From Fimbriosthenelais zetlandica (taxonomy: Eukaryota): a stretch of 64,000 bases of DNA. The translations under genes were made by a program, and so were the position numbers. Shown here piece by piece: positions 9,376-52,425 of the stretch. A model generated the notes under the pieces. It saw only the letters and a program-made list of their open reading frames with translations, was not told the origin of the DNA and made no database searches. The stretch covers positions 4,216,001 through 4,280,000 of the forward strand of contig OZ365116.1 of assembly GCA_977030845.1 (NCBI GenBank). Direction: 5' to 3'. Numbering within the stretch: the stretch's first letter is position 1; every line of letters begins with the position of its first letter.

Positions 9376-9448
9376 CTAACAACTTTGTCTTTTTCTTTTG
9401 CAGGTAAGCTCAAACATTGATTGAAAATATGACTGCTTAAGGGTGAGT
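9376..9448 (+). other. Recursive splice site RS1 with 39-nt cryptic RS-exon (9404-9442)
   Basis: CTAAC branch point at 9376-9380, then AACTTTGTCTTTTTCTTTTGCAG|GTAAGC (junction 9403/9404). Second donor AAGG|GTGAGT at 9443. Confidence 0.8.
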
Positions 9449-9719
9449 CCGACAAAAATATTTCCAATTACCTTTCGGTTCAGAATTGGAAAAGTCCATT
9501 TAGATTTTTAAATCCATTTGTTTGCAAACTGTGTCTGTTTTAAGTGTCTTTTCCGGATAAATCTCCAGCCCACCCTTGAGTTTACTTAAGTGTCTCGATA
9601 GAAGAACAAATGCAAAGATCAAACCTCAAAGTGGGCTCAGATCCCACTAGAGATTCTGCGTTTCCCGACCCATGTGGAAGCATCAAGTGCTTGTCCTGCC
9701 TTCCCTGACCTTCCCTCTA

Positions 9720-9960
9720 CACCTCAATGTAGAGTTAGTCACACACGTCTCTCCTCTCCGGGATTATCAGCTTTAAATCTCATAACCAGGGTCAATATTA
9801 GCCTTCTATGGAGAGGTGTGTCCTCCCTGCCCTCAAGGATTCTCAATCTGTCCGGGTGAGGCATCTCTCCTGTGTGCAGAGAGTAAAGATCGACGTCCAG
9901 TTGAAATTGTTGGTGTCTTTGAGTTCAGGAGGTGAGGGACCTAGAGTTAAACACCCCCTG
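9720..9960 (-). mobile_element. Possible LINE endonuclease-RT linker relic
   Basis: The - strand reads ...NFNWTSIF...PWL*DLKLIIPERR, loosely like the CR1 linker (IDW...PWxTxEIKKLIRxK). Weak. Confidence 0.2.
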
Positions 9961-10721
9961 TGTTTGTCTAGAGGTCATCCAGGTCAATATTGGCTTTGAG
10001 GGCATTGTTCAGCCTACTGACCAGGACAGATTGGTCAGTCTCTGGAATGTGTACCCAGAAGGAAGGCCTTTGACCATTGAGTAATGCTTGGCAATGGTCA
10101 GCATTATGAAGGATACGGAACCTGATGTTGACCGACTAGAACCCATGTCTCATGCCCTGTAGACCAGGCACGGCTGTATAGGTGATCAGGGGCAGTAGTT
10201 GCCATGTTTGCCTCTGTTCCATGTTAAGTGTCAGGGGTAGATGACAAGGGTTTAATCAGGACCTTGTATGCTCAACAGTACAGGTGTTCATGTATAGAAT
10301 GCATAAATCAGTAAGCAACACACCCTTCATACTGAAAATAACCTATATGTATGTCCCAGGAAACTAATACATTTTGCCCATTGTACTTAGGTTTATTAAA
10401 TTTTCATTGCCATCTTCTAGTGCCGATGAGCAGGAGTAAATGAAATACGCTTTGCGTGAATATGGCAATTACTTTAATGTGTATAGGTAGACTATAGACG
10501 TGCCTGGTGCTCCATTGTACATAATTCTGCTAAAATTGTATGTAGATGTACTCCATGCACTTCTATTTTCTGTTCTATGCTTCTCCCTGAGTTTTATAAT
10601 AATTTTGTCTTTGGAAACAGCTCAGTGAGGTAATGATTTGTCTGTATTGAAGTCTGGGTGTTGTTTTTATTGTATAGTGATCATTATATCTCATCCTCTC
10701 CTTCCTTTCTAATGATGTCCA

Positions 10722-10790
10722 TGGGGCTCAGCTGGGGAAGCGAGTAAACAGAATGTGGTGCCAAGCACCGAAACAGGTTCGAAAGGCCCG
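10722..10790 (+). mobile_element. Possible degenerate tRNA-derived SINE head
   Basis: A-box-like GGCTCAGCTGG (10725-10735) and partial B-box GGTTCGAA (10776-10783) at tRNA-like spacing. No cloverleaf. Confidence 0.28.
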
Positions 10791-11479
10791 TAAAAACAAA
10801 CTATGATGTATGGGGATTATAACCGGTACACACTCGGTCGATTTTTTCATCAGCAGAAATCTATTATTCTAATTACCCACAGTTATCTGTTACCATTCAT
10901 AAGCTGATTGATATGTAATCAAATTAACTTCTTTGGGTGGAATTCGCATTAAGACATTAGAAAGTGAACATAGATCACTTATAGGTGCATATCGACTAGA
11001 TCTAGGGGTATCGGGGGTATAAACCCAGCTAGGGTGTGGCTGGGTAAAAATCAGGAGGAAAACATTATAGCCCTATTTTTATATTTATTCAGCTTTCTGG
11101 GGTTTAGCCCGCAGCTGTCTTATCTCAGGGCAGCCAGTGTATTTATACGCGTCTGTGCTAGCACCACATACACTCTGTACGATGTCACTCTCACTGACTG
11201 CCTCCATCCAGTAATGTGTAAATTTGAATTTAAGAGGCAAATTTAATCAAAGAAAAAAGCCAGGATGGTATAATAGGGAGTCGCCATTGGGGAGTTTCTA
11301 TAGGTTGGTTTAATGAATTGAAGTCAGTGATGTGAATGGCCTGACTTCATCTGTCCCTAGTCAGCCCCCTTATCTCTACCGACCAATGTGTGCTACCTGT
11401 CCACAGGGTTTAACAATGCTTATCATCAAATCCTGAATAGTTATCATCTACAACTTGGACGTACACTGCTCTTCAACAG

Positions 11480-11790
11480 TTTCCTTCCCAATCAAAAATG
11501 CTGATGGCATTCTGAAGTAATTTGGATTCCTTTGTTCCTGCTAAGATGGGGGCTATGACAGATCTGTAGGGCTGGAGAATGGCATCAAGATGTTTATTGA
11601 TGTGACTGTTGCCTCATTGGAATTAAATTCTTTATGTACTGCCATGGTCATATTAGGAGGGTGTACGGTATAGTCTTAATGGAGTGTTGTCTGGGTAGAC
11701 CCTCCCCGTCTTTCAATCTCTGTCTCTGTCTTGGGCAACACGTCTGTCACAGCAAGGGTGCGAGGACTATAGGGTGTCACTGAGGGATAC
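11480..11790 (-). mobile_element. Decayed LINE apurinic endonuclease (APE) domain fragment, CR1/L2-like
   Basis: The - strand reads YSPRTLAVTDVLPK (compare xxPDIIAITEVLPK). YRS and FDWE occur downstream in another frame (compare IYRSP and IDWE). Interrupted by stops. Confidence 0.4.
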
Positions 11791-11952
11791 AATGGGCAAA
11801 AACCTGCATGTTTTTATGCCTTGTTTTGGGCGTAATAGTGTTCTGTTTTTCTCATTTGGCACTTTTTGGTTGTCAAACGTAGTACAATGCTTTGTGTGGA
11901 GTATCTTAGAGCAATGAGTAAGTTACAATGTGAGAGGTAAATCATGGTAGAT

Positions 11953-12062
11953 GGGACATTATGAGTGCTTTATTGTATAGTGATAAGGCTTTGGTTGGTT
12001 ATGTATGTGGGACATATGATGAGTGCCACATTAGTAGTGATACAGGCATTCTGTTATGTAGG
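11953..12062. repeat. Diverged 56-bp tandem duplication
   Basis: GGGACAT..ATGAGTGC..AGTGATA..GGC.TT..GTTATGTA occurs at 11953 and at 12009. Confidence 0.7.
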
Positions 12063-13860
12063 TTGCCGGACTATTTGCCTCCGGCTCGTACTAACCTTCT
12101 TTATAACAGATCTTATCTCCTCAATAAGAACTGGCTTGAGAATTTATAATGAACTTCATATCAGTCAAAATCTGGAATAGCTTTGAAATATTCCCCCCTT
12201 GATAACTCCTCAACGAGCCATAATTACTGGCAATTACGGCAATTAAGCAATTACATGTGAAGCTCCTTCTACAAGCAGCAGGCATTCACATTGTGCGGGG
12301 AGTCTTTATAAAATTCTCCGGGGAACATTTTTGCCACGCCTCCTTTCTGCTCCTCAAAAAAGAAAAGACTATATATGAAAGAATCTATACGACCCGAGGG
12401 TACTTGCCTTTTTCAACTTTATATGCATTGCTGGAGCCACTTTAAATTTTCTCTTGACACAAAATCGATTGCTTATCTTGATGTATTGTTGCAGGCATGT
12501 TGGGGGGAAGAGTTCCATGCCCCGTCTGCCACCTTCCCCCGCTCACAACCCATGCAGGCATGGTAAGAGGCCAGCCCGGAGTTGAACCCTCCATTGCCTC
12601 CGCCCTTCTTTTACAAAATAATTCTCGGGTCATTGATGCATGCATTGAACTGGGGCTGTTTTTGACAGTAGGGAGCATAGTACAATCAACACAAAAATAG
12701 GAATGAGCAAGTGGAAAAAATCCTGAAAGGAAGGAGTAACTGATCCATCAAAATGATCTATATGCCGGTCTACTTTGGTCTCAACTTTTGACACCATTCC
12801 TGAACAATTGATCTAAAGAAGAGAACTGTGCAAAGTTCTGCGTGCCTTGTTTTTGATGATTGAATGGATGATTAATCTAGAGGGTTGAATATATCTCGTC
12901 TCTGTGACTGGATGGAGTGTTGTAGCATTCCTACTCAGAACCTGACCCAGAGGATCAAGGATTGAATGACTCGACTAAATTTTACATGAAAGCCAGCATA
13001 TGAAGGAAGGCCTGGCTTATTTATATCACATTTCAACTCCCCTTTCATTGAAAAATCCTCCGACAACAAACTTATGAGTTATCCACTTTATGATTTATTT
13101 TGATTATTGGGACAGGAAAGGGAGATACAAACTTCTGTATGTGACCAGTACTATGTAAGCTTCCTTCATGTCTATTAAAGGTCAATGACTTACTCAATCT
13201 GAAACATAATATAATTATATATCACTCTAGTTAATTTCTTTTAAATTTTGAAGTCTTTGCAGAGAGAATATCGCTTAAGAAAGAAAGCAAATCCAAATGA
13301 ATGCAATGGTGGTTTGAAGCCGATAAAGAACAAAATAAAAACATCAGTATGCGGATGGCCCCATGAATGAACTGTCCAAGCCAGGCCAATTTTTATTAGC
13401 AATCGGACACCGATTGATTACCTTTTTATTATGTAATATTCATCAGGTAATTAAATCTCTTATTAAATTGTATTTTTTAAGGTAGCGTACAGGTAATTAG
13501 TACACGCAAGTTTGAGTGAATTGAAGGGGATATGCTGCATTATGTTGTAATGCGACTTCGTTCTGAATTCACAATGAAGCATTTAACTGGACAAAAATGT
13601 TTTTTTCCATGTTTAAACCAGATACTCTAATGTAAATTGTAGAATGGCCCCTGGGCCTCCAGGGTCTCTTTCTTCAGTTAATGTAGAGGTAGTTTGAAAT
13701 TGGCTTCAACTTATGCTGCGCTGGGAGATCATTACCAAAAAAAACGTTAAAAACAAAATTCATATTATCTCACCAACTGCTGAGGGGCGTCATTTTAATG
13801 AAAGAGCCCACAAAAACTACATGTGGGCGTACCGTGACATGTCCATTGTGTGATCGTTTA

Positions 13861-13902
13861 GATACATGTTATGATACATGTTATGATACATGTTATGATA
13901 CA
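13861..13902. repeat. 12-bp tandem repeat (3.5 copies)
   Basis: GATACATGTTAT three times, then GATACA. Confidence 0.9.
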
Positions 13903-16900
13903 GTATTAACAGTCGTTATGTTGCTCAATCGTTGGCCATTCAACTCTCGACAGCGAGATTGTGATCGTGTCTGTATTCAACATGAAATGGGAATGAAAAC
14001 AGGTGTTGCAGTGTAGTACACGTCTGCCTCAGGCAGTGAACATTTGACAACCATTTCTGATGGCATCATACGATTAGTCCAGCGATACTTCCCCTAAACC
14101 TGCCCACGCCATGAGGAGGCCCCGTATATTATACATCAAGTTTTCTTATCGTATATCTCAATAACTTGATCGAGGGTGTCTAATCATTGCTCAAACAGTT
14201 CCTGTCAAAGAAAACTATTTCCCCATTTGCAAAGGAATATAAAGGGACATCATTCCTTTGGGAAAGACCTGAACATTCCAGGCCACTAGATCTAGGAAGT
14301 TTAAAAACCGTCAAAATGGCAGACGCCTGATGAAAAGTTCTTTTTATATACTACTTCAGTACATCTGTAGTTTGTGTAAATGACTTTCAGGATGGGAATG
14401 GATTACATGGATCGTCTGACGTTCAATGAATGGCGTCCGTTTAATTAATAGTCCATATATATGCTCCATCTCCATACATTCACGGTCTCTCAGATAGTAT
14501 CTGAAATAACTATAAATATACAATAAACTAAGTATTCATTTAGTAAGCATATAGTGCATGTTATGATGTTAAGAACATTGGGTGTCACTGAGACTTACTT
14601 GCTATTTGATGTGAGGTGATTTGTCTGTAGATTAAGGAGGTACAAGCTGGGAGTTATTGGAGTCTGGTGTCCCACAGACCGCCATTAAATAGATTGTTTG
14701 TGGATGCACCAAGTTGGGGAGTAGAGGCATAACAAATAAATCCAATAAACGGGGAAAATAATGAGGACAAATGAAATCGGAGGTGGACAGTGAGAGGGGA
14801 GAGGGGAGATTGGGCAGCCATCAATCTGTCCTAATTCCTGGCGTTCCCCTCTACTAATTGACTATAGCCAAGAAGCTGCAATTTTTCTCCCATCCATGTA
14901 CCACACTAAACAGACCTGTGATGGATACGAGTGATTTTTGTCTCATTTTATGCCCGTTTTTATGCACCACCATCATTCCTGGCATCATCATAGTTCTCAT
15001 TTGGCCAGATGACCATATCAGTGGTAGCGTACTTATTCATTTGATTCACTTGGTGAATTATGGAGAATTGGCAGTGAAGCATGTGAAAATGGTGAACCCT
15101 ATCATCACAAATTACAACGTGGACATGTTTCCATGCATGTACAAATTGATACAACATTTCCACGGACTTTTTCCCCTTTCTATCCTCTCTCGAACCTCAG
15201 CTGGAGCTCCGACAACCAGTGAACATGTCCATAAACAAGCCCATAACTTATTTAATAACAACTGGGCAAGATATTAAACATTTTATCTCGATTGTCAAGT
15301 CTTGTTTGTGGAGCGAGGCATACTATTGAACGAAAGCAAATGTTGTGCTTAAAGATCTTTAGTCTACATTATGAAGACCATATGTTTGTGGTTAGACCAA
15401 TACAAAAATCCGTCCAATTTTTGTTGTAAGCCAAATCTGAGCGCTCCATACACTAAGGTCTACCTGATATACTAATGTTGCCAAGCTCTTGGCAACTGTT
15501 GAAAACTGAGGGACATGACTAAAGGAAGAAAAATAAGAATAAAAAATCATATGTGGGGCTGTGCCAAAATGCGGTCAGAAATCTAAGAGAACTTTGTTCA
15601 GGGGCTTGTATTGATGTGGCGGGAAAGAGAAAGTTGGGCGGATGGGTGAGGGTTGATTGTAGAGTGAGAGACAGCAGACAATGAGACATGATTGTTGACG
15701 AGTTAGATCTTTTCTCGTGAGGATACATTGTCTCTCACTTTCTACGTACAGTGGCCTTTAACTTTAAAAGCTTTGGGACTTATGCTGCTCTCCATGGTTC
15801 AAAAAACAAAGCTTTGGATTACCTAATGATTTAGAATTTACTTTATTGCCTTCTAGTCTTCTAGTCATTTGTATGAAGAAACTGTTGCGGGTGTGTGACC
15901 CTTCATATACTGTGGAGAAGTTGTTCATCTCTGACGGTCCACACCTTCTGTCAGGAAGTCTAATGTATTCCTAAATGCTCACTGACAGCCTTGAACTGTG
16001 GCTATTCCCATCGTGGACTTAACACACCTGAACGTCAAGGCAATCATGTGAACACTTTAACCTACACTTATAGTCATGGATTCTCTACCTTCACCTCCAA
16101 CCCCTTCCTCACTTCCCATCCTCAGGGTTTCCTTTTGTCATTAATTATTCTCTATCACATTAATTAACATAGACAACTGCAATGTACCTATAGTTATAGC
16201 CTAACCAAATGCATTATACCAGTCCAAGTACCATATATCTGCTTAGGTAAATGGAGGTATATTGAACAACCAATCTTTGCCGAGGCAGGCATTTATTGGA
16301 AAGAATATTCAGTGGAGGATTTTACATTTACCCTGCTATATGATGACCCATCTCCACCAATGTATACCGTATATAAATGAACGGTGAAGTTGTATGTACC
16401 AAGTCTGAGACATTAAATCAGGGGATATGCGTATATACACACACTCAGTCATTGACTCTGTGATGGAATATGTATATAGAAACAGTGTAATTCAGCACAC
16501 CCTATAGTTCTCCCTGTAAGGGAGTTGCCCAAGCAAACACTGCCTTCTAGCCCGCTTATCACCACTTCTCTGATATGACAGTTTGTGATATGACAGTCGC
16601 CTACTGTCTGAGCACTCTGGTCGTAAGTGACTTCTGATGTCAGTTGGCTGTGAATACAGGGATCACAACTCCCGGCATGTGTAGATGTTGTCGGGACTCC
16701 ACTGCTGTGATTTTGCTTGCAACATCTGCGACCTTATTTTTTTGCACATCGCGAGGCTGCAGAACGGCCTTCTTAGGCCTGTTTTGGCTGCTCTTTTCAG
16801 TCTAACAGGCAGTTTTGGAGCTGCTTTTTCTTCTCAGGCTTGGACACTCCAACCACAATCATCTCTTTTGTCGCAGTAGTGTTGCAAGGAAAATGGCAGT

Positions 16901-19900
16901 ATTGGAGGACCAACTTTTTTTTTTTTTTAAATTTGATGGCCTACTGCACTGCACCGCTATGGGATGTTTATCCTCATAGGCCACCTCTTCCCTTCCTGCA
17001 GCATCTGATGCTGCTGTAGTACATGCAGTTTCTGATAAGCTTATATTTGAAGCTAAACTTAAATACATATCCACATTCGCTGAATCAACCTCTGCAAAGT
17101 TCTCAGTTGTTTGTGTCTCACCAAGTCTCAGATGTCTAGGTCCTATTCTGTAGATCCCTCTTGCCGTATAGAGGCCTGTATATATATTCTTGAAATATGA
17201 GCAAACTTAACTTCCTCTACTAGAATCTTGTTCTCAATTAGCTGGATGTCATCTAGTCATCGGAGAAATTACATCTCCCTGCTTTCATTTCATATCATAT
17301 GTTGGATTGCCATCTAGCCATCAGAGAAATCAGAATAATATGAGTCATCTGGCAATCTGAAGATTTTCAGACTAATACTTGGTTAATCTGCCATGTAACA
17401 TGAGGCCTCCTGAGATCGCTGCTGTCAGTTTGGTCAGTCTGTTCATTCCTTGATGGCAAGGTCAAGGTCATCTTTATATAGGTCATGTGTTGAGACCCTA
17501 CATGAGTATGATTTCTGTCAATGTGTGTACGACAATCTCGGATTTCGTTCGCTCTGCAGACTAATGCTTTTCTAAGGCTGCTGATTGGCAAATGAAATGG
17601 CAATTTAAGTAGGTACAACAACAATATGGAAGACCTACTATTAATGGTTAGAAAGATATGACAAAAAAGGTCTAAATCTCAGGAATGCTCGTTTTCTTTG
17701 CTGACCTTGACCTTTGACGAGACTGGCAGTTTCGTATCAGGGAGTCAGAGGAACAAAATGGCAACCTCTATTTTTGGTAATGGGTGCATCTCAAAGCGCC
17801 TCTGCTGCAGTACTATATAGCATAGAACATGTAGCCATTCTCTGAAACTTGTCCATGCAAGACATGAAGGATTCAAGTCCTACAAAGGAATATTATCAGA
17901 TTATAATGAATGTCGTTGTATTGTGATGGATCAGATGGTAAAAAAATAACCACATTTACTGCTGAGGTTTAATGATTGATATATCCCGCCACATCAGACC
18001 TTGACTGAGGCCGAGTAGATGTGAAATATTGATCCCATTCACATCTATTGATGGATTGGATCAATGACTAAAAGAGAATATTCTATGCTAAGTCTATTTC
18101 CAGGCAGACCAGAGTGAAAATTTAACCAACGTGCCATTCCCTGGGTGGTGTGGGGAGGCTGCGAGATTATTTTTTCCCTTGGGAATCTATGAAGGGGATG
18201 GAAATAGCTGTAGTAATTTATTCAATTAGGAGGAGGCTGGGTCAGTCCCATGCACCTCCGAGGCATCCTGTTAATACTTTGAGGTAAGAAGAGAGAATTC
18301 ATCTCAGTGGGAAGAAACAAAGAAGAAAGTGTGATGCTCAGAGGCGTGATGTTCAGGGTTTACATCTCATTATCAATATTCTCAAGGTCCAAAGGGATGA
18401 ATAGATTACTCGGTGGCCTTTGACAGATATCTTTAATATTGATGTAAGACAAAATGATTAGTGCATCTTGTGGGGGTTTCTGGTCCTCTAGGGGACTTTT
18501 GATGATTGCTTTAATGAGTCTTGGGTCGCTAGGTACCAGCTCTGGTGCTCAAGGTGCCAGGATGCTCGTTACAATGACATGCACCCCCATCTTACACTGA
18601 CTGACATCTTACAGTGTCACATGCGACGACAAGGATGTTGTCCACAGCATCCAAACCTTCAGATATACTTGCTAGTCATCAATTGAGTTTCATTGGGGAA
18701 TCGCTATTCCATTGGAATGGTTAAGCTAGGGTCTCCCCATTCCCTCTCACTGTCCCTCATTCATCCCTTTCTGTCCTCCGACCCCCGATACGATGTTTGC
18801 CAGTGACAGATATTTGTTGCAGAACTGATCCTGTCTGAACACAAACCAAGAGCAGCCCAATTAACCCAGCAGTATAGGTACATGACAGATGATGGCAGCA
18901 GCTCGGCCAGCCTGATAAATGGTGTTAATCAGCAGTCTGAAGGCTGAATCACAAGGTTCAAGCTGTAGAAATACACCAGAATCCCTGCATCTGCAGGAAA
19001 AGCCATCTTTGAAGCCACTTAAGAAGCCATGTAATCAGCCTGAGGTCCAGTGCTGCCAGTCAGCCCCGCCTCCCTTCACACCATCCTATACATAGTGTTG
19101 ACATACAGGTCGATGCTGCTTAAAGTTTGATTTCTTTATTTCAAGCCCCCGGGATTATGAGATCCATGGGGAATTGGTTTGTCACACTTTCAGACGCAGA
19201 CTGTGAATTTCCATTAAGATATGGATTGTCTTACTTACATTGAGAAAAAGCACTCAATCACTTACATTTCTAGGCAATCTTTTTTCTGTATTATATAAAA
19301 TGCAATCTTTGTTTTGATGCATCCATAGCAGTATAATTTAGCACTGTTCATAAGAATTAATCATTTAGAAAAGTGAACCTTCTCAGTTAAGTTATGGCAT
19401 TTATTGAATCCACCCTCACCACTTGCCCAAATCCGGCAGCATTGCCTACTATTCTCTTGAAGTAACAGGCCTTTTCTCTGGGATTATGCTCACGAAGAAA
19501 AGCCAGGGTTGATTAATGTGAACTCTGTCTGCTGATCAGTCAAACCTTACTCATTGATCAGGCAAAACTTGCCTGATTAACTGTCATCGTTGGTGGCCAT
19601 CAAAGCATTCTCCGCCCTACCTGTCTCCGTTACCCATCTTATCTCAGCTGTCCGCCAGGGGAGCTATAAGCTGTAGATGGGAGGGCTGCTCTCTGGCTGA
19701 TCAGATTAGATCCTTTGAGGTGCGTCTTGGGGTCATTAATTAAAGGTAGTCTCCACATACACCCCCTGATTACCATGTTAGATGTTTGTCATCAGATGTT
19801 GTTGAGGAAGCCTCCTGCCCGTTCCAGATCTTCCCTTTGTGATCTGGTTGCTATGTAGAATGGTGTCAGGAAGTTTGGTTCCTCTGTTCTTGGACATCTA

Positions 19901-20762
19901 CAAGCCATTAGTGTCCGTGTTGGTCACGGAGGTTACCTTGGAGCGCGGGGTCATTATCTAATTATCATGATAGGTTGTGTCTCTCTGTCTTGGGGATGAT
20001 TGGAGCAGGGTCTTGTTGGCCATTCTGGGTGCATGTTCTTTGTTGTATGTAGAAGCACCTCATTGTATGTCCTAACAAAGGCCTCTTTCCCTGCCTTCAT
20101 ATTACTTGCTCAGGGCCCTGAACAATGTATAAAACATAGTATCAAGATGTATATGATCATCTAGTAAGTTGTGGTGCCAACGTTTGACATCGTCTCATGC
20201 TTAGCTTTCAAATCATTACTGTGTACACAAAAATAGCTACAATATGAGAATGTCATCAATGCGGTATCATTTTATTACTTTAACATAAATATCCTGAGGG
20301 GATGGAGATGAGAAGGTTGAAGACTTGAGTTTTAAAGCGTTGTTCTGGGTCTGTACAGCTCATATCTGTCCTCGGGTTTTGCTTGTCAAAGGGAGAGTGG
20401 TTCAGGAAGTAAGCCAGCCTTCCAGTTAGATGTATCACTCGTCTTTTGCCTTTACCTGACTATAGTCCATTCCCCGCCAACCATCACCCTCACATACACC
20501 TTGTAAGCAAGATTTCCAAATAGTAAATTCTGACTATAAACAAGAATACCCTCTGTACTCTACTATCCTTGTAGTGTATCTTTGCTATGAATGACAGTCA
20601 TCTTGAATGGTTTTGATATACAAACTCCAGTCAGTCATGGCTGATGGTATATGTCTGTCCAAAGCTTATTGTTACAAAGTTTGGTTGGACAGACTGTAGG
20701 AAGACTATCTGATCGATCATTAACCACTCAGTGATGCATATAGAAAGCTCCAGAGGAACCCC

Positions 20763-20786
20763 GGGGGAAGGGGGGAGGGTGGGGGG
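20763..20786 (+). other. Canonical G-quadruplex motif
   Basis: G5-AA-G6-A-G3-T-G6. Confidence 0.7.
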
Positions 20787-25696: not shown

Positions 25697-25765
25697 CTAA
25701 CGTTTATTTCTTCTTTTTTTCAGGTAAGCATCTTAAAAATTATCAAAAGTCGGAGAAGGGTGAGT
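25697..25765 (+). other. Recursive splice site RS2 with 36-nt cryptic/alternative exon (25724-25759)
   Basis: CTAAC at 25697-25701, then GTTTATTTCTTCTTTTTTTCAG|GTAAGC (junction 25723/25724). About 88 nt upstream are free of AG. Second donor AAGG|GTGAGT at 25760. Confidence 0.8.
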
Positions 25766-25997
25766 TTTCTAGTATTCATAATAAAGTAATCAAGGATGGA
25801 AAAATGCCCTCAACATCTGCAATATGGTTAAAATGACATCGAGACTATATATATAATAATAGATGGGATGTTATGTTTCGATAGTCGGGATAATGTCCCA
25901 ATATCTGCAGCATGTTGATCTGATATGGTTATAACTCAGACATCAGTGTGATAAACAATAGATCCATGTGGCCATAGAAAACAATGAGACGGCTGTG

Positions 25998-26010
25998 TGA
26001 CCTTTGACCT
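25998..26010 (-). promoter_or_regulatory. Perfect DR1 nuclear-receptor motif (AGGTCAAAGGTCA)
   Basis: TGACCTTTGACCT on the + strand. Motif match only; function not shown. Confidence 0.3.
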
Positions 26011-33690: not shown

Positions 33691-33749
33691 TTAATCTGCT
33701 ACTTAATCCTGCTTTAATCTGCTTTAATCTGCTTTTATCTGTGTAATCA
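33691..33749. repeat. About 10-bp degenerate repeat carrying TAATC(C/T) motifs
   Basis: TAATCT 33692, TAATCC 33704, TAATCT 33715, TAATCT 33725, TTATCT 33735, TAATCA 33744. Confidence 0.7.
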
Positions 33750-33844
33750 GGCCAGATAGGCCGAGGTCAGAGCTGGACGCTGATGACTTATAGGCTGCAT
33801 ACACAGGCGCCCATCAGATTAGGACGTTCTCCCTTGATGAATGA

Positions 33845-33889
33845 CTGCCTCATCGGCAAGACGCTGCCTCATCGGCAAGACACTGCCTC
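33845..33889. repeat. 19-bp tandem repeat (about 2.4 copies)
   Basis: CTGCCTCATCGGCAAGAC(G/A) twice, then CTGCCTC. Confidence 0.85.
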
Positions 33890-35280
33890 GCACAAACTTG
33901 CCAAAGAGAAAAGGTCCAGCGTCCATGCCCACTTGGAGGCTGTTTTCAAAGCAATGTAATCAACTTGTTCATCCATCTTCCCCCTCCCCGCCCTTTGCCT
34001 TGTGCAGATTTTCTCTACCTACTTAGGCTTTCATGTCAGTTCTTGTCATGCTTATCAACTTGGAGAAATAAATTTTATACCGTGCACAAGATTCTCTTTT
34101 TGATTCTGATTTTCGATCATCAATAAATTCTCTGATAAACTGATAGGATGTCTGGCATCCTACATTTTTCACTGAAATATATAGAGTACAATCTCTAAAG
34201 GATCAATGATTTAGCTATCTATACTGACTTTGTTAGTTGATATTTATTCAATAGATTGTGGAAATCGTACAATGGCAGCATATATCATTAGTTCCATGGC
34301 AATTTATTAAGTGATGTCAGAAGAGTATGAAGTATACAGTGGTATATGAACTCAACCTTGGTAATACTAGTAAACCCCGCAGGCTTTAGTTGTGCAATGT
34401 CCAAATCATCTATATATCACTGTCATTCTATGGCCATATTTTTAGCCATTAATTTCTACACAATGCGCATCACACAAATAGGCTGACCTCAGACATGATG
34501 GATGTATTCAATACTTACTGACCAATGAATTAAACTCGACCTGAACGGTCAAGCTGCAGCATGGTATACGTGTGCTCACGATCTTCATCATTATGTTAGC
34601 TTGCCCCAGTTTTTAATCATGTAAAAGTACCATTTACTTGTTTGTATTTTTGGCCACGTTGCCCAGAGAAGACATCTCAATGCCATGTCATGTTTGAGAG
34701 CTTTTTGTTGTCCTCCATGTAAGAGAAATGATCGCCCACGGTAGCAGCAGATTGTGTCGAGCGAGGAATGCATTAGCATTCATGATTAAATGAATGTATT
34801 TTTTTGCCATGTCAGCTTTTTTTTCAAGGCAGTAGGGGTCCATCATTCATGCATTGATGAGCTAATTTCTGGAGGCATACTAACTGAGAGGAGGCTTGGT
34901 TTTAGATTTGAAGCCACTTAAGCCGCTATGAATCCAACATGAAGCCAACCAGTGTGAATTAAGCCAGGGGCCAAACCCAACCTACTTAAAGTTTGGATTC
35001 TACCTTCACCTTCGTTAATACCTTTTGAAATTCTTTTGCAATTTTCTGACAGGTTCAAATACTTATGTGGATTTAGTATAGAAGAATGGTAACAGATTAG
35101 GCCTACTCATGCTATATGTATATAAACTGGGAGACTTTGTTTGCTTTTCTTTGGACAATATTTGTCTTCTGTAGCAGAGCCATGCAGGTTCCATTCCATG
35201 CCTAATACTTATTCTTTCAAGGGCATGGAAATAACTGATTAAAATGAAAATATGAAGCATGAAGTTATGCCTGATATTCT

Positions 35281-35373
35281 TTTCACTTATAAGTCCATAT
35301 TTATCTTTGTAGGTAAGTTCATTCACCTCTGTCCATTCAACAGGGAATGAAAGAATCCAACCATAATGTAAGT
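35281..35373 (+). other. Recursive splice site RS3 with 55-nt cryptic RS-exon (35313-35367)
   Basis: TCCATATTTATCTTTGTAG|GTAAGT (junction 35312/35313), with putative branch TTCAC at about 35282-35286. Second donor AAT|GTAAGT at 35368. An upstream AG at 35292-35293 makes the acceptor less clean. Confidence 0.62.
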
Positions 35374-38300: not shown

Positions 38301-38770
38301 GAAAATGAGGCTCATTTTTGCTGAATTAAGAATTTGTCTGGATATGATCATTTCTCTTTGAGAAAAAAAGCTCCACTGGAAAATTTCATTCAAATGAAAA
38401 GCCATTGAGCTTCATCACAGGCCATGACAGCTTATTATGTGGCTAAGAAATGGCAACTGCTCGCCTGGTAAAAAACGCTATTGACCGCCAAGAATGACTT
38501 GCTCTCGTGCAGAAGTTGCCTCTTCTGGCATGGTCTGGCCAAACAAACCGAGCACACTGTCTGTGTACTGAATAGTTTTCACTTGCAAAACCAATTTCAT
38601 TTTGGCAAGATGACTATTGAACATTTGAAAAAAGGCCAGCAATTACTTGCTCTGGAGAATTTTAGTTTTCCATAGAAATAAACATGAGTTTTCTTCTTTA
38701 AAAGCATTTAGTTGTCGTTGGCTGTTGAACTTTCCTGGGCGAGAATGTTATGAGATCATGACAATGACAT

Positions 38771-38865
38771 GGGAGGAGGGGTGGGTAGAGGGGGGCGGTG
38801 GGGGGTGGGTAGAGGGGGGAGGTGGGGGATGGGTAGAGGGAGGAGAGGGGGGGAGGGAGGAGAGG
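38771..38865 (+). repeat. G-rich 24-bp tandem repeat (about 3 copies), G-quadruplex-forming potential
   Basis: (G/A)TGGGTAGAG at 38781, 38805 and 38829 (period 24), with many runs of 3 or more G. Confidence 0.85.
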
Positions 38866-41800: not shown

Positions 41801-42939
41801 TATACATTTGCCTCGTACCAACTAATAGCATGTTGATTCCCGATCTGATAAAAAATAGTACAGGTCCATTCTGATAAATTGATGGTACGGTTGATGTTCA
41901 GAATATAAGTAGGCCAGGGAATGGCGTGCGTGCTGCGGTAATCCCATTCTAATGAATGGCTTTGGATTTAGCAATCTGACTGAATAAATGCCATTCTTTT
42001 GGACATATTTTACTTGGCCAGTTTACCATCCTTATCTCCAGCTAACCAACATACCTGGTCAGCGCAGAGTTTGACTGCGGCAGTTGGAATGGCTGTGATG
42101 GTGAAATGAATCACTCCCTGCAGTGTCGTCCACATCAACCTTTTATCATTTCCATTCATCATAGTTGGCAATGAAGGGTCCTGACCTCTGTACAATCATA
42201 TTGCTGGGATAACTGTTATTCCCATGTTAACCTAATTCAGAGGACATGGAATTTGATATGGGAAAAACTAGGTAGTTCATGGGTATGAATATGTTCAATG
42301 ATTTATGTTCAGCACCCTTCCTAACCATTCTGTTAAACCTTCCGGGTCCCATTTGCTTTTTCCTGTATTTACTACGTTGAAAGCAGTCCATACTATCACT
42401 ATAAAGCCTTTTCCACCCAACCTTAACAAAGCAGCATTTCTATACATGTTCACGCAATTTCATCCGAAAATAAAATAAAGTGAGATATGACATGTCCTAC
42501 AGTAATATCGTCCTTGATTTATCCGGCCACTCGGCCTTCATCCCATATACTGCATCTCAATGTGTTCCGACCATTTTGTTTGGCATTTGACCATACAGGG
42601 CTAAAGAGCTCCTAGCCTTGAGTTATGAGTACATTTCTCTCTCAGCCACATTCATGTTGCCCTCGGTACATTTGATACCCGGATGGTTGGATTTTCCAAT
42701 ATATCCCACAGAATGAAGCATGGCTGGACATGAGGCATGGACTGGGCTTCCATGGGTAAAGTAAACTTATATGGTGAAGGATACCAATTGAATGGAAGCT
42801 TGGTTTTGACCTTGTGGCTTCTGGGATGTGGGTGCCATGGCTGGACTCTAATTGAGTCGTTTACTCGGCCAAACTCGGTCCTGTCTGGCTCTCTCCTCTG
42901 GACAGGCCCTTCGGGCGATAATGAAGGAATACTTCCCTT

Positions 42940-43350
42940 TATGGGAGGATCTCCCTCCTACCATTATTGGATCCTGATTCTCAGTATTGAAGGAAGACCA
43001 TATTAGGAAACATTCACTACTTTGAATCCAGGAGCAATTATCTTTGAGGCAATTGTCTGGTCAAAAGGATCCATCCCCCTTAGGGTAATGAGACGGGTTT
43101 ATGTGGGAGAATTCATACAGGAATAACATGCTAATGCAGGCTTCAGTATAATACTGGATGGGTATTCATAAAGCTTTGATCTTCAAGGCTTGTATTAGAC
43201 CTGCTTCCCTTTGGTCTTCTAAATGAGGCCTTAACCTTTCCTGCCTTGCTGATAATTGTGTTCTTGCTCAGCCTCTCAAAAACTACTCTTAAAGACCTAT
43301 ATGGTCTGATCTGCATTATATTTAACCCCAAAAGTCTATTTTCTCTTTCC
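42940..43350 (-). mobile_element. Decayed CR1/L2-like non-LTR retrotransposon, C-terminal part of ORF2
   Basis: Manual translation across frameshifts gives NRLLGL, then LRPHLE, then GLPS...EGD. These resemble, in the right order, the CR1/L2 ORF2 motifs KANRxLGxIKR, VRPHLEY and LPSLxxRRxRGD. Many stops; matched from memory, not by search. Confidence 0.5.
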
Positions 43351-43938
43351 ATATTTTCCTGATGCATAACCGATAATCGTATGTTTATTTGAGACCAATT
43401 TTACGGCAAAACTTCCCACAAATCTCACCGCAATCTTCACCATACTTATATTGATTGGACAAGAAGCCTAACGTCCTTTTAAGTTGAATGATAACTCATG
43501 CCTGACTTCCTCCTTCTGTCCCAGACACAAGCTTGTAAGCTAAACAACTGTAGTATAGATAGCCAGGTGATTGAAGGCCTGACAGTGGGAGAAGAAGCCA
43601 CTTCTGGCTGGGTTGGTGTGTAGAGGGATAGGTGGCGCATGGCAGCAAGCTGGAAGACGAGTCTCCTCATCCATGAGTGGACACAGAAGCCATCCATCTA
43701 CCGCTGGTCAGGCTTCCCCAGGGAACACTGACCAGCATGGCGTCCCAGACCCACAACATGTACCCTCCACTCCTCTCCCTTAACTGTCCCAATCGAATCG
43801 GATTGCTGGACATTGCACACTGTCTGGGACAGCCGTGGGTCTGAGAATTACACTGGTGACTGCTTCTGCATGTTGAATGGAACCAAGACATGTCGGAGAC
43901 AGGAGCTGCTGGACTCTGTCCTCTCCCCGCACCCACCA

Positions 43939-43952
43939 CTCTCTCTTTCTCC

Positions 43953-43991
<39 letters not shown>
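43939..43991. repeat. (CT)n microsatellite
   Basis: Perfect (CT)18 at 43955-43990 with an imperfect 5' extension. Confidence 0.95.
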
Positions 43992-43993
<2 letters not shown>

Positions 43994-46900
43994 CTGTCGC
44001 TTTAAAAAAACCGGTATAACCTGGCGCGAAACATCTCAAAACTAATAGTAAAAATCTTTTTTTAAATCCAGTTGACACCATGTCTACTTTATGAAATATC
44101 CCTCTTCAATCTCCCTACATCTTGGTATTCAAAGATTAAGTAATTTTCTGCACAATTTGACCTCAATAACTTCGGGGGGTAATTTATATATTTCTTTCAT
44201 ATTGTAGGAGAATTTTAACAAACATTACCATAAATCCTTGATGGGATGATTTTGTCCTGTCAGTCCTGCCAGGTTCTAGCCCCCTATTGAGTCCCACTGA
44301 CATGATTTACTCCAGCCCATCCATGCCTAATGAAAGCATTTCCTTTCCCCCCTTTTTTCATGGCGTAAGTAATAGGATAGTTTGTCTTTTTCCCTCGGAG
44401 GGCAGTTCTCTTAATATATGATCTCAGGATATTGCGTCAACCGTAAAAGAAAAATGACATTATGTATTTACCTTAAGTGATCCCCCTACTCATAAATATC
44501 TCTTCAGGATTACCTTATCGCCCTGGGATTTCAGGGAATTGTGGCCCGGCCCAATGCAGCTGACAAGCTTTTTATACCAAGTAGCCATTGATTTATGTTG
44601 GCAAATACCCTTATTAAACAACTAAGTTTCCAAACATTGACTGTCGTACACAGCTCTTCTTGAGAAATAAAACTCGCTGTTAAAAAACTGCATGCTGAGA
44701 TAGATTCAACACCCAAGGGCTGGGATTTTAGTAAATATATCCAGGATAATAGGATTCTTACCGTCACTTAGTGACAAATACTGATGGATGTCATAGCAAC
44801 CAAGAGGAAGATCTAGTGAAGTGTTTTTGACTTTTAAATCATTTAATAGCTCTCCCTCCCTGGGCATCGGTCCTCAGCTCCCATTATGTCCCATTCACTA
44901 AGCCCGGTATACATTTATATATCGATAATGTATAATAGACCCTCTCAACTACTCTCCCCTGTAATCTATGTGTGTATTTTAAAGCAAATATGTTATTTAA
45001 GACTCAAAACATTTGTATATACCAGGGGAGATCACTTAGATTATTGTGTTGCTCATGAGATGACATTTCCAGAGGCTTTTCCTATTATACATACTTATTA
45101 TAGGTTGCTTGGTGTACCTGACTGCTTGTCGCTTATTTGTGATATGATATTTGTAATATTAATGCTGTCCCCCACAGGAAAAACGTCCATCAATGTCTCA
45201 ATAATGAGCGCTTGTCATGAAGATATGCACTAAGGCTGTGTTAATTTCCAACTTGTCAAGGATATTATAATTTTTGATAGTTAAATTTATAGGGTGGTCC
45301 TGTATTTTTACAGAACCTTTTTTTACATGACCTTATCTGTTAGATGAAGACACTGAAAATAAAATGGCTGATACTTGAGTTTCAAAGGTGTTCCTAGATA
45401 GGATATGGACATGAAGGCGATGCTCTGAACAGCTTACTTTAATTTTTGAACTTTTCTAAATGAAAGAGAAGCAGTAGGTGGTGCAGTTACATCATTGTGT
45501 CAGCCATTAGTGTAAGGTGCTGCATTGAGCAGTCCCCATTTGAGAAATGATCACCTCTAGAAACGTCAAGAATCTAATCAATGTACTAATTAGTGCTATT
45601 CGCTCTCCAATGTGTGACTTTTGGATCCGCGGGCGTTTCAGTGATGGATCCGCCCTTTCCTAATGATCTCACACTAATTCTCTACTCTAATCTCTCCCCC
45701 AGGCCACGTCCTCCCCTCAAAATGTTCAAAATGTTTCTTCAAATTATTATTACCTCTGCGGGGATGATTTCTTTTTTTATAATAATTATTTCCCTCCTCA
45801 TTTCCCCTGTATGGACTTCATTTTCTTCTCATCTTGCTTTTGTTGAGACCATTCGGGTAATAATCTTTTTTCATTTTTTTGCATTAATGTGTTTACTGCA
45901 GAAAATGAAATCATTTATGGAGGGAGGTGAAACCACTTAGTGGTCTGTGTGTGGCAGCTTTGGCAGGCCTTGCCCATGTCTTAACTACCAATCTAGTAAA
46001 CACAACTCAAAGTACGCTTCACATACTCGATGTTTTCCCGTAATTGTCAGTCCTTTCTGACATTTCATAAGCATTTTGCAGCGCTTTAAGTGGACGCCAA
46101 TAAACCCATCAAAATCTAAGCGTATTCGTCTCCGTAAAAAAGCTACCTTTATGTATATGAGATTCGGTGTAGCGTTCTTTTCTGTGGAACGTTTTATGCA
46201 GATTTCTGACAGTTTAATGCCCTCAGAAATCACCAGTTGTCATGCATGGAAATGCAAGAGATATCCGGATTCTCAGATTAAAAAAAGTACCTTAAATTAT
46301 ATTTATATTTACTTTTGCCGAATGATTCATTCAAATTCTGCATCATTTCAACCCATTTGTCAGTTGGGAAGTGCAGAAATCGAGGCTAATAGCAATTTCT
46401 GTTTTCATTAATGAATCAATTAACCCAACTGAACAATTAATGCGGAGGAAAAGCCATGTCATTTCCTCAAGTCTTCTCTCCATATTGAATTTCTCCAAAG
46501 AAGCCTTCCAGAAGGTTCCTCATTATTGGAATGAATTTGTGTCATTTCTTCCCTTTTCTTCCTTCTGTTTTTTCGTATAATACAATGACACTCCTCTTCC
46601 CTTCGATATTCTGTTAGTCTATATTTTCTTTGATCAAAGTCAACGCTATTAAAAAAATAGGTGTAAAATAAAAGGCCTTCGTGATATGTTCACATATACC
46701 ATTCTAAATCTTTTTGGGTCATGTTTGGAAAATACATGATAGGATAAAATGTACCTTTATACCACTTTTGATTTCAGTTTCAATTCCCATTAAGGCATTT
46801 CAGTACCCAAGTTTTAATGATGGTCGGCCACGCCGTCATCTGAATAAGAGGTACAGGGACAATATTGAAGAGCATAATGAATTATACCCTGTCTGTTCTT

Positions 46901-49900
46901 ATCTCACCATCACACTGTTTTACCCCGTCTATTTATCACCCTCAGGACCACACAAGGAGATTGCTTGGGAACTGTGAAGGCTGTACTCTATTAATGCCCT
47001 CATCCAACTATATGATGTCCTTCCATGGTCTTTGTCCTCACCAATATATGCGCTTCAATTTATGTACTCAAGAACTCACTCCCTTCTCTATTCGTTCCTC
47101 TTATATTCAGAAATGAATTTTTTGTGAACATAGAGTTGGAGAATAGAAATATGATCAGAAGTCATTAGGTTTTATGTTGAGGATATGAAATATCCTTATC
47201 CATCCCCATTGTTGATGAGCTAAAGTAATGCAATATTTCTATCAGGAAATCAGTCTTCGCACCTTAAGATATAAGGAAACTGTTTTGTTGCAACTTACAA
47301 AGAAAAATGAAAATCATCTTACTCATATTGAATGACAAGAAACTTCCTTTTCATTGTGCTGAATCCATTTATCTTAGAAATGTCAATTGTGGAAGGACAA
47401 TGTTTTTGCCATAAATTATCTGGAAAATTTAGTGGAATGTACTGGCGTTTTTTGAATGAAAATGAGCCAACTTAAGTGTCCTTACCGAAGCCATTTATTT
47501 GCTTCTACCTCTTCACAGCCTCTTCCCTGCCTCCTCCACTCTCTCCACTACTATTCATCAGTGAAGAGAAGCATATACAAACACACAGCAGGTCCAGCAA
47601 GCTGTGAGAATGAAGGTCCTTTAGGAGGACATCACATCGTCAATGACAACATCCTCTGGTGCCATAAACAGACATTGCCTGGTCTTTGTGCCTCTCATGA
47701 GTTGAGAGCAGCATGTGAGAGCTCGCTGCTGAACGTCCAGCCTGCTCGCCTCTATACTTACATTGTAATGGCCACTTGTGACTTTCTTTATGACCAGCAA
47801 ATATTACCAGCTTTCAGCCGTGTGCCGGTAAAACTGGTTTAGGTGGGGTTTAGCGGCCATTAGTGGACAGGATAGAGACATCCATGTTATGGTCTCTGTC
47901 AGCAGGCCAGCAATACTAAGTGGACAATCTGCTTAACCTACCTAAATCTCCAACTGCACATAACCACCGGCAAAAGTGGCCACAATCACATTGACTAAGC
48001 TCGTGTAATTGTGTATATACGACTAGAGCTTAATGCACTTTGTAGGCCAACTAAGGATCACTTCAAATATATTGAGAATTGTTACAAAAAATCATCAGGC
48101 GATGCATTGCTCGCTGATTTTCATATCTTTGCACACGGATTATAGATTATTATATACTATAGGCCGGAAGCAAGCAGAAAAATAATCTTGAAGATGATAA
48201 ATGACACTTAAGGTTAATTAAATCGATGTTATTTGAGAGGAATAGATAGGATTAGCGAGGGTAGGGGTTAATGGTAATGTGGGGTGGGTATTTGTTTTAG
48301 GACTTCTAATTGAGAAATTGTACAATAGAAGTTTTATTGTAATATGGACAAAACTATCTGTGTGATAAAGAAACAGACATAATTGGCCGCCTGAAAATAC
48401 ATTGTAGAAATGGAATTGGTAAAGATAAAAGGCTTATTAAACTTCAAAAATATGTAAACCGGTTTTGCAAGAACCTGCTTTCATGTCCACCATGAAGTAT
48501 CAGCAGTGTTATACTCATATCTTCAGCAATCATCAGCAACCTACCTCTGTCATTTTACAGATCACAACCAATTACTAATCCTAACTCACCAAATTTATCA
48601 CGCCCAGTCAATTCCCCGCTTTGTACCATTTTCCCCCTTTTAATCTCCCACATCAAAGAGACCAGGAGATTTTCTCTGCTGAATAAACCATTGACTTTAA
48701 TGCTGCAATGGAACATGGGGCAAATACAATTTTATTCTACTGGGATATTTATGTGCATGGTTCAAGGGCCGGTCCCTTTGTTGCCTTAAAAAGTGGACAA
48801 ACACAGATATTTCAGCTCTACAGACCGATCCACCCACCTGGGTTTTTACTTTCATTTTCTCCCCCTTCATCCTCTTGAAGTTGCAAAGCAATTAAGGGAG
48901 ATTTTGCCTATGAACTGGGGAAAACAAATTTTCATTCTTTGTTCAGTGTAAACTCAGTACAATAGGTATTTCAACATGATGTTTGCACATTTGAAAAAAG
49001 AGGTTTTGCTGCTTTATCATAAGAAGTCTGCATGACGTAGCACTGTGAACATATATCAATGCATCGTGTATGCTGAAGGCTTTACAAGCATTACTTAGAC
49101 CTTTATGTCAATATGAAACCTTTTACTGGAAGTTTTACGATATTATGTCTCATCTTCTCTACCATAATATACATGTAGTGGACATGGTATGAAGCAAATG
49201 GAAGCAGGAACAGCTAGAAATGTAAGTTTCTCTATCTTGGTTTCTGAATTTCCTGTTTCTGATTATTAATTGCGGACAGCCCTTGTGAGGCTGACCTTTC
49301 TAAGGCCTCAACTGCCATACCTACCATCACTCGCACAATATACGGCCCTGCTTGTGCAGTTACACTTGCGGCAGTTGCAGCAGAATATCCTCTGGAACTA
49401 CCCGATCATGACACTCCTCAACACGAGTCCCTTAACAGGATTGCAGCTCTCGGCAGACCTGATAAAGTTTTTTATGATCATGGCCGCCTTGCTATAAGTG
49501 CATGGGTCGCGCGCCAATCTGGCAACTGTCGACATTCATATATTAACTGAGCGCGTGCAGGAAGACTATTAATGCCTTCATCCTCCCACCACCCTTCATG
49601 CCTGTCCTTTAGAAATGAAATACAACCGTCTTAAAAACATCTCCTCTCCTTTCTATGCATTAGCTTTGTGCGCCACCGATTCTCTTTATGGGTCTGCAAA
49701 ATGTCAGTAGTACTTAAGTCGTGTGAAAATTAATCAATGTTCTTGACATGCATCATTGACAGGTGAACCAAAATACGAAATAATTTCGTTTCTAAACTTA
49801 CTTCATCAGTTGTGATTTAACATTTTTTATCTCATTTATTAATGAAATATTGGCCCAGAAAGTTTCATAGAAGCAGATCGCTCTGAGAACGAATCATGGG

Positions 49901-52341
49901 AATCGACATCATCTTTCTTTTTGGGCCAGGGGAGGAGGGGAGATGGAGGAAATGGAGGAGGGAATTTCATTTTGCTGGGAAGTCATTCAATATGAAATAC
50001 CACAAGTGGAGGGAATCGATGGAGGTCGGGGCTAGATGATGATGTATTGTGGTGATATAAATCAGACACTAACTCCCGCAGGATGCGCGCTCTTCTTCAC
50101 GTGCTTGACCTGAGTCGTGAAGAATGGACTCTCCAATGTGGACCAGACCATGTTGTGATAGGCCACAGATACGTCCAGCGCCGCCCCGCGGGGCCATAGA
50201 TCACATTAGAAAACTTTTGACTGTCCCAGCACCCAGAGAAAATACCATCTCCTTCCTTCATCGATTGGAGAGCAATGTCTTTTTTCTTCAACTCAATCAT
50301 ACCTTCTTTTCGATACCGCTTTGGGATATTCTGGTCTTTCTCTTCATATTTTCCCCCTCAATAAAGGAGGCAAATCAGGATTTTTGATGGCTGGTCTTTC
50401 TCGCGTGGGCAAATGACTTGAGGGGACTGTAGGGGCAATATAATATGGCTTGGTGGCTGGTTGAGGTCATACTTCACCATGTAAAAGAGCCTGTAGAGCA
50501 GTATAATGTGTATATTAGCATGTCCCCACAAACCTACAGTGACATGCTACATGTGTATTATCCATACCTCACACATCCATGCTAGCATCCTCATACAGCC
50601 CGCAAATCCTTAACAAGCCTGCCACCCAGCCTACATCACTCATTATGCTACTTCACTGTCCTTACCATGCTCCCGCTATATACAGTAGTGTCTGGCAAGC
50701 AACTACAGATTAACTTCTCTACCTGTGGAGAATAATGCAACCACAGAACACGCAGACATGAAACTCTAGCACCTCTCTGTCAGTCAGCTCTTCTTCCTAT
50801 ACTGCAGCATCTCATGCCCTGATGCAATTGCCTCGTCAAAAAGTAAGATCCAGCATGAGAAAACTGAGTCAGGGCCTACTCGAGTCATCCAGATGGGAAG
50901 AGCCGAGCTGAGCGTCTGAAGTGACAGGCCTGTTTGTGCAGAACATAGGTCGGGCAGTCCTCCTCTGTTTGTCTGTAGACATCCTAGATTAAAGGCCAGC
51001 TTGGATGTGTTTTTCCAAGAAAACTTCTCCATAAGAGAAGTAGCGACTGACATCTTCCCAATGACGATAAGAAATCTGATGGATCCCATTTCTTAGGTTG
51101 TTTCCCTACTCTCCAAATGTCCCATAGATCTTATTTCATCTGAAGAATTTTTTTAAAAAATCTCTCAGTGTGATTGTACTGGGTCCTCAGTACATTATCT
51201 GGTAAACAGGAGAAAAGTTGTTTATAGTCGGTTTTGGATGAGTTTCAGAGTGGATGGATTCGGTGTATGAAGGATGAAATATCCTGGTTATCCTGGGGAT
51301 ATCCGGCAGGTGCTCTTATCGTGATCAAGATGCAGCACCAGGCTTGGCGGGGACGGCTGGTGACGGGCGGGGGCATGTCTCACACTAAAGGTCACAATCC
51401 GTCATTATAATACGCCACTTTGATGAGCCTTCATCATCCATGATCTACATTCAGAGGGGAAGAGTTTACTACTGAGCTCCTTGACACACTCCGCAATCCC
51501 CCACCATGGCTGGCGGCATGCTGGTCATTATTCCTGGATTTAAACCAAGATGAGATATGTCAGCAAAAAGGGCAGCATGATGCATCCATAGGCAATCTAC
51601 TCTTATAATATACAGGAGCTGGGATTTTGGAAACTGATGGGTCAGTGGGGTTAAGGGGGTGGGTCCAGTCTCGTGGCCCTTAAATTGCTCTATTTGAGCC
51701 GAAAAAATCTCATGATGATTTTAAAATGACCAGTGTAAGCCAAACCCTTCTGTCAGCTATTTCATGAGAGTTTCTAGATATTTTCTCCACAGTGATAAAT
51801 GTAGGTTGCTTTGCATTGCATGATTGTGCCTTACAAGCCCTGACATGTCTTTAAAGGTCATTCCACACTTATTACCTCCACCGTGGCTCAGTGCGGGATC
51901 AAGGTGTGACTAATGATTATTTATATGAAAAACACAGCGAGCACCAGCCGGCCAGTCACATCCTCCAGTCCGGTACCTGCCTCGGGTCCTGGAGGAAGGC
52001 TGAGGGCATAGGAGGGAAGGCTGAAGGCATGAGGTAGGGCCTATTGGCCAATCTGAAGATTGTCCGAGTATTGTGGAGACAGGAAACGTGGTACTGGCAT
52101 CGTATTTCCGATAAGATAAAATGTAAAATGTTAGAAACTTAGAACACTTTTGTTGACTCGATACATTATAGTATAGAGTATGTCCTCTGCTTGATATGTG
52201 ACATCTATTGCTGTCTTTGCTCTGTATTCATCAAAAGGTCAAAAGGACACATTATATCACACACTATATTATTGTGTCTAGTCTTATAGCAAAATCATTG
52301 ATTTCCTTTTTCGCGTTTTATAGAGTTTATTGTCTGAAAAT

Positions 52342-52425
52342 CTGATGACTTTGCATTTTTGTCATTGCAGGTGAGTTAGTCGTGACATTCTGATGAATTT
52401 ATAGATGTTAAAGGTTACAGTAAGT
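52342..52425 (+). other. Recursive splice site RS4 with 49-nt cryptic RS-exon (52371-52419)
   Basis: CTGAT/TGAC branch candidates at 52342-52349, then TTTGCATTTTTGTCATTGCAG|GTGAGT (junction 52370/52371). Second donor ACA|GTAAGT at 52420. Confidence 0.72.

Follow-up and report, generated by a model that had tools for sequence, protein, structure and literature searches.

The DNA analysed here is a stretch of 64,000 bases of contig OZ365116.1 (assembly GCA_977030845.1, positions 4,216,001 to 4,280,000 of the forward strand; free of N), called the window below, and every count refers to these 64 kb unless stated otherwise. It carries four + strand junctions at which a full 3' splice site runs directly into a consensus 5' splice site, the arrangement of the ratchet points of recursive splicing (RS), and these junctions, together with the intron to which they would belong, are the subject of this work. 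A pattern scan of both strands for YAG/GTRAGY (the slash marks the junction) returned exactly four matches on the + strand, at 9404, 25724, 35313 and 52371, and none on the - strand across the whole window. The four junctions, numbered from left to right, read ...cttttgcag/GTAAGC at 9404 (RS1), ...tttttcag/GTAAGC at 25724 (RS2), ...tctttgtag/GTAAGT at 35313 (RS3) and ...cattgcag/GTGAGT at 52371 (RS4), all on the + strand. They are separated by 16,320 nt (RS1-RS2), 9,589 nt (RS2-RS3) and 17,058 nt (RS3-RS4); RS1 lies 9.4 kb from the start of the window and RS4 11.6 kb from its end. An earlier note on this DNA had listed four sites with their donor sequences and spacings: the sites and donors are exact at these positions, and the recomputed spacings are identical. 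The features of the window are the following:

9376-9403, + strand: RS1 3' splice-site module; CTAAC at 9376-9380, branch A at -25, tract with 15/16 pyrimidines, TT at -6/-5, CAG
9404-9442, + strand: RS1 ratchet donor GTAAGC (9404-9409) and candidate cryptic RS-exon of 39 nt; stops in 3/3 frames
9443-9448, + strand: RS1 putative RS-exon donor AGG/GTGAGT; offset +39
25697-25723, + strand: RS2 3' splice-site module; CTAAC, branch A at -24, tract with 15/16 pyrimidines, TT at -6/-5, CAG
25724-25759, + strand: RS2 ratchet donor GTAAGC and candidate RS-exon of 36 nt; frame-preserving, open in 2/3 frames
25760-25765, + strand: RS2 putative RS-exon donor AGG/GTGAGT; offset +36
35271-35312, + strand: RS3 3' splice-site module; CTGAT, branch A at -39, weaker tract with 12/16 pyrimidines, TT at -6/-5, TAG
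35313-35367, + strand: RS3 ratchet donor GTAAGT and candidate cryptic RS-exon of 55 nt; frame-shifting, stops in all frames
35368-35373, + strand: RS3 putative RS-exon donor AAT/GTAAGT; offset +55
52342-52370, + strand: RS4 3' splice-site module; CTGAT, branch A at -26, tract with 12/16 pyrimidines, TT at -6/-5, CAG
52371-52419, + strand: RS4 ratchet donor GTGAGT and candidate cryptic RS-exon of 49 nt; frame-shifting, stops in all frames
52420-52425, + strand: RS4 putative RS-exon donor ACA/GTAAGT; offset +49
1-64,000, + strand: presumed host intron, with both ends outside the window; non-coding, uniformly CpG-depleted, richer in T than in A, nearly repeat-free

YTRAY branch motifs are present 24-39 nt upstream of each of the four junctions, which puts the candidate branch A near 9379, 25700, 35274 and 52345 at RS1 to RS4. 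The interval between motif and acceptor is free of AG at RS1, RS2 and RS4 and contains one AG, at -21, at RS3; at RS2 there is no AG in the 60 nt upstream. CTAAC branch points had been claimed for the chain as a whole, and this holds for RS1 and RS2, but not for RS3 and RS4, where the motif is CTGAT. The upstream tract has at least 12 pyrimidines in 16 positions at 4/4 + strand sites, and TT occupies -6/-5 in all four, compared to 15.6% of the strong acceptors in the window. An extra acceptor (ttttatag/) was found 47 nt upstream of RS4 (region 52324-52370), and in an alternative local reading the GTGAGT of RS4 could also be the plain donor of a 47-nt pseudo-exon.

The number of junctions was compared with 1000 dinucleotide-preserving shuffles of the window, done in 1-kb blocks. 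On the + strand the shuffles averaged 0.10 YAG/GTRAGY sites preceded by a pyrimidine tract, and not one of them reached four. If the 141 strong acceptors and the 48 GTRAGY donors of the + strand are taken as independent, 0.106 coincidences are predicted and four are seen; the corresponding estimate for the - strand is 0.058, with none seen. A generic acceptor-plus-donor position weight matrix (PWM), serving for ranking only, placed RS1-RS4 at ranks 1-4 among the 465 AG/GT sites of the window (215 on the + strand, 250 on the - strand), with scores of 22.5, 22.3, 17.4 and 15.9 bits; the runner-up on the + strand had 14.5 bits and the top - strand site 13.9 bits. Sites of at least 15.9 bits amounted to 0.185 in the shuffles, whose best score per shuffle had a mean of 14.1 bits and a 95th percentile of 17.5 bits, and the approximately 22 bits of RS1 and RS2 were equalled only by the single best of the 1000 shuffles. 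RS1 and RS2 are individually beyond chance on the junction alone; RS3 and RS4 are not. A fifth candidate, at 55912 (CAG/GTAAAT, 14.5 bits), was dropped: it is within the noise of the - strand and of the shuffles and has no second donor.

The earlier note had roughly estimated well under one strong site per strand by chance, and the values obtained here (0.10-0.19 by shuffles, 0.106 by independence) bear this out. It had also seen no site of comparable strength on the - strand, where there is no YAG/GTRAGY and the best score is 13.9 bits, compared to at least 15.9 bits for the four sites, and the PWM count on both strands against shuffled sequence that it proposed as a check returns the four sites as the top four of 465. 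The sequence architecture is strand-specific and far above chance, and the earlier observation is confirmed and is stronger than had been put.

Each junction is followed by a second donor. GTRAGT occurs only 25 times on the + strand, giving a P of approximately 0.012 per site of one falling at +30 to +60, and of the 14 best-scoring AG/GT sites on each strand, these four are the only ones followed by a GTRAGT at a distance of 20-100 nt. Sites of at least 15.9 bits with a second donor number four in the window, compared to 0.005 in the 1000 shuffles, with a maximum of one in any shuffle. The best reading of these donors is that each ratchet point heads a short cryptic RS-exon, of 39, 36, 55 and 49 nt at RS1 to RS4. 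Stops in all frames close three of the four putative RS-exons, and the length is not a multiple of three in two (RS3, RS4). The all-frame stops were considered as a sign of selection and judged weak in this role, since GTAAG or GTGAG shuts one frame automatically. The RS2 exon (36 nt, frame-preserving) could be an expressed micro-exon.

RS1 (9376-9448) and RS2 (25697-25765) are near twins, with CTAAC, a T-rich tract, CAG/GTAAGC, an A-rich exon and AAGG/GTGAGT in both, and either an old duplication or convergent constraint may lie behind the likeness, which is confined to the branch motif, the tract, the junction and AAGG/GTGAGT. A repeat-borne motif was considered for all four sites and rejected: the 300-nt flanks show no alignment beyond the splice signals and the window is nearly without internal repeats. 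Since no flank is a copy of another and internal repeats are almost missing, the motif was not brought in by a mobile element.

All that was tested at the sequence level for Drosophila-type recursive sites with cryptic RS-exons was found at the four positions: 3' splice sites abutting 5' splice sites, TT at -6/-5, a branch motif, specificity for one strand, segment length, and a putative RS-exon with its own donor. The ratchet-point architecture recognised in the earlier note fits every one of these. We consider it probable, at roughly 0.75, that the four sites are functional Drosophila-type ratchet points in one long + strand intron, which would measure at least 43 kb and probably more than 64 kb. 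What we infer from the architecture is the use of the sites by the spliceosome, the order of the steps and the placing of all four sites in one intron.

The mechanism proposed for these sites is adapted from the established RS-exon model. As each site is transcribed, U2AF would bind the TT-containing pyrimidine tract and the YAG, and U1 would bind the GTRAGT donor 36-55 nt downstream, by which the RS-exon would be defined. The upstream exon would then be joined to the RS-exon, with a lariat of 10-17 kb let go, and this ligation would set the upstream exon directly before GTRAGY, regenerating a 5' splice site. The regenerated site would compete with the RS-exon donor and serve the next step, the RS-exon would depart with the next segment, and the mRNA would keep no trace of it; mistaken inclusion of the RS-exon would introduce stops and/or a frameshift at RS1, RS3 and RS4.

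Ratchet points with cryptic RS-exons are reportedly known in Drosophila (Ubx, kuz, luna, Bx), from work attributed to Hatton 1998, Burnette 2005, Duff 2015, Joseph 2018 and Pai 2018. In fly Bx and kuz, mutating a ratchet donor reportedly turns skipping of the RS-exon into its inclusion. Drosophila genomes are not CpG-depleted and the window is (GC 41.4%, observed/expected CpG 0.425), so that a drosophilid origin is unlikely, as the earlier note had argued from the same depletion. The four sites are like those of Drosophila in the (Y)nYAG/GTRAGY junction, in TT at -6/-5, in the several sites per intron (a single intron being presumed here) and in the strict sense-strand bias (here 4 to 0, the sense strand itself being presumed). 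Duff et al. described 197 ratchet points in 130 Drosophila introns, with TT at -5/-6 in 196 of the 197, recursive segments with a median of 16,368 bp, and a maximum of five sites per intron, for example in luna (108 kb) (bioRxiv 10.1101/006163); the 'bite-sized' segments of Pai et al. measure approximately 9-15 kb (PMC6110457). The segments of approximately 9-18 kb in flies have their likeness in the 16.3, 9.6 and 17.1 kb found here. Drosophila RS-exons are approximately 50 nt long, variable and mostly out of frame, and the RS-exon is recognised first and skipped later, since the regenerated donor wins (PMC8605326). The cryptic exon of approximately 50 nt with its own donor corresponds here to putative exons of 36-55 nt, mostly with stops or out of frame. 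The window is unlike Drosophila in the CpG depletion of the genome (observed/expected 0.42), in having GTAAGC instead of GTAAGT as two of the four ratchet donors, and in RS-exon donors whose intronic halves are at least as good as those of the ratchet donors; moreover, conservation and RNA intermediates have been demonstrated in flies, whereas the sites described here are predicted from sequence.

Recursive splicing is also said to occur in long neuronal genes of vertebrates, in work ascribed to Sibley 2015 and Blazquez 2018. The likeness with vertebrates would be that RS-exon definition comes first, that donor competition settles skipping, and that inclusion would bring premature stops. Only nine fully suppressed intronic sites have been definitively noted in vertebrates (PMC8605326), and in their large introns ratchet sites are little enriched on the sense strand (ratio of at most 1.5; PMC2773006). 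Unlike in vertebrates, the chain of four strong sites in 43 kb follows the fly pattern.

Outside these groups, Shepard et al. 2009 computed a sense-strand enrichment of ratchet sites in the large introns of mosquito, bee, beetle and sea urchin (PMC2773006), and in the 230-kb intron of the locust NPF1 gene a predicted ratchet site is supported by U2AF65 immunoprecipitation (PMC8892266). The suggestion of an uncharacterised lineage in the earlier note overstated the novelty, as both the non-drosophilid enrichment (2009, PMC2773006) and the locust site (PMC8892266) were already published. These reports differ from the present case in giving genome-wide counts or one predicted site, whereas a four-site chain is resolved here, with putative RS-exons, TT at -6/-5 and fly-like spacing. 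A literature search returned no paper pairing recursive splicing with molluscs, and where a paper names recursive splicing beside annelids or cephalopods, it does not describe the process in these animals.

The window as a whole is like one long non-coding, CpG-depleted stretch with a strand composition bias, which is compatible with a + strand intron and is no proof of one. Of the 32 bins of 2 kb, 29 have more T than A on the + strand. In 1-kb windows there is no internal promoter or CpG island (maximum observed/expected CpG 0.72, median 0.42), and nowhere in the window do CpG or GC rise locally as they typically do in exons. Over the six frames, the 30 longest segments without a stop (101-174 aa) were searched against Pfam and gave no family at or above the cut-off, the sole sub-threshold match being DUF6463 (E 0.017), and neither coding exons nor transposon genes were found in this way; a scan of the window with Rfam gave no family at the gathering score, and thus no structured RNA gene. 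As RS1 is 9.4 kb and RS4 11.6 kb from the ends of the window, the ends of the intron and the host gene probably lie outside it. One very long intron, as the earlier note proposed, is plausible given the lack of coding signal in the window, but neither a boundary nor the host gene is contained in it.

Genuine recursive sites distributed over two or more introns that are separated by small undetected exons, or sites belonging to a long non-coding transcript, are an unlikely alternative to a single intron. Short exons could escape the methods used, the host gene is outside the window, and the + strand has eight further acceptor-donor pseudo-exons (those at 8218, 20114, 31349, 35663 and 52634 among them), with four on the - strand; however, the 30 longest stop-free segments gave no Pfam signal and no exon-like local CpG/GC rise was found.

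We also think it quite improbable that the sites are plain short cassette or poison exons (36-55 nt), or 5'-untranslated exons of some mRNAs, in which the GTRAG at the 5' end is little used and the exon regulates isoforms or nonsense-mediated decay. Each site makes a well-formed exon, its full acceptor being followed by a strong donor, the ratchet and RS-exon donors are about equally strong, the 36-nt exon of RS2 is open in two frames, and expressed RS-exons are known in flies and common in mammals (PMC8605326). Nevertheless, all four exons open with a near-consensus 5' splice site, which is unexpected for ordinary exons, and strong acceptors followed by GTRAGY are only 4 of 141, exactly these sites. 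Cassette exons also fit poorly with the stops in all frames of three exons and the frame-shifting length of two, and the regular spacing of 10-17 kb fits the subdivision of an intron; even if included in mRNA, the exons would still count as RS-exons. Highly improbable is that the junctions arose by chance or are pseudo-sites in decay, not used by the spliceosome and lying in DNA that is untranscribed or transcribed in antisense: the junction scores of RS3 and RS4 are in the upper range of the shuffles and further pseudo-exons occur in the window (8 on the + strand, 4 on the - strand), but the joint architecture, expected 0.005 times per strand, is seen four times and all on one strand, TT is at -6/-5 in 4/4, and RS1 and RS2, at approximately 22 bits, are reached by the single best of 1000 shuffles only.

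Several points weigh against reading the sites as functional ratchet points of a single long intron on the + strand. Neither the host gene with its strand nor the ends of the intron are contained in the window. In their intronic halves, the RS-exon donors (GTGAGT, GTGAGT, GTAAGT, GTAAGT) are as good as the ratchet donors (GTAAGC, GTAAGC, GTAAGT, GTGAGT), and as these halves are comparable, the outcome of the competition between ratchet and RS-exon donor would depend on the last bases of the upstream exon, which are outside the window. The PWM is generic, and both it and the pattern were run after the four sites of the earlier note were already known. Judged by the junction alone, RS3 and RS4 have scores that the best-scoring shuffles also attain, and the case for these two sites consequently rests partly on their extra features. 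Finally, three search routes gave no orthologous sequence, and hence no comparison of conservation: an exact scan of metagenome contigs with the 33-nt core of RS1 had no match, nor had the 118-aa stop-free stretch across RS3 in a peptide-pattern scan of metagenome contigs and in tblastn, nor the 87-aa - strand open reading frame over RS3 in a protein search.

RNA evidence for recursive splicing comes, to our knowledge, mainly from Drosophila and a few vertebrates, with motif counts beyond these. The mechanism is a known one and no new mechanism is revealed here; ratchet sites in non-drosophilid invertebrates had been predicted before, and the four-site chain adds a further case. What the chain offers is a clean set of four sites that show the fly architecture in full, in a genome that is CpG-depleted and non-drosophilid, at precise and testable coordinates, bearing on RS-exon-mediated ratcheting as a general metazoan answer to long introns and on a segment length of approximately 10-17 kb as a conserved constraint. 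A broader reading, which we put forward tentatively, is that this may be a non-arthropod invertebrate genome with genome-wide fly-style ratchet chains and cryptic RS-exons; the complete Drosophila architecture (meaning here TT at -6/-5, RS-exons of approximately 40-55 nt and segments of approximately 10-17 kb) would then have been inherited from the ancestor of protostomes or of bilaterians instead of being a dipteran speciality, and would coexist with gene-body CpG methylation.

Minor features of the window include its cleanness, unusual for a giant intron: its longest run without a stop measures 174 aa, and coding sequence of transposons is not recognisable anywhere in it. A tandem array at 53054-53234, approximately 700 nt downstream of RS4, consists of approximately 10.6 copies of the 16-nt unit ATTAGTAGACATAAAA, with a higher-order period of 78 nt at 93% identity. 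The G-rich tandem repeat at 38778-38865 (24-nt unit, 3.3 copies) could form G-quadruplexes on the + strand, and the 36-42 kb stretch around it has an unusually positive GC skew, of up to +0.19. Two simpler repeats were also found: a (CT)26 microsatellite at 43939-43991 and, at 13861-13902, 3.5 perfect tandem copies of a 12-nt unit.

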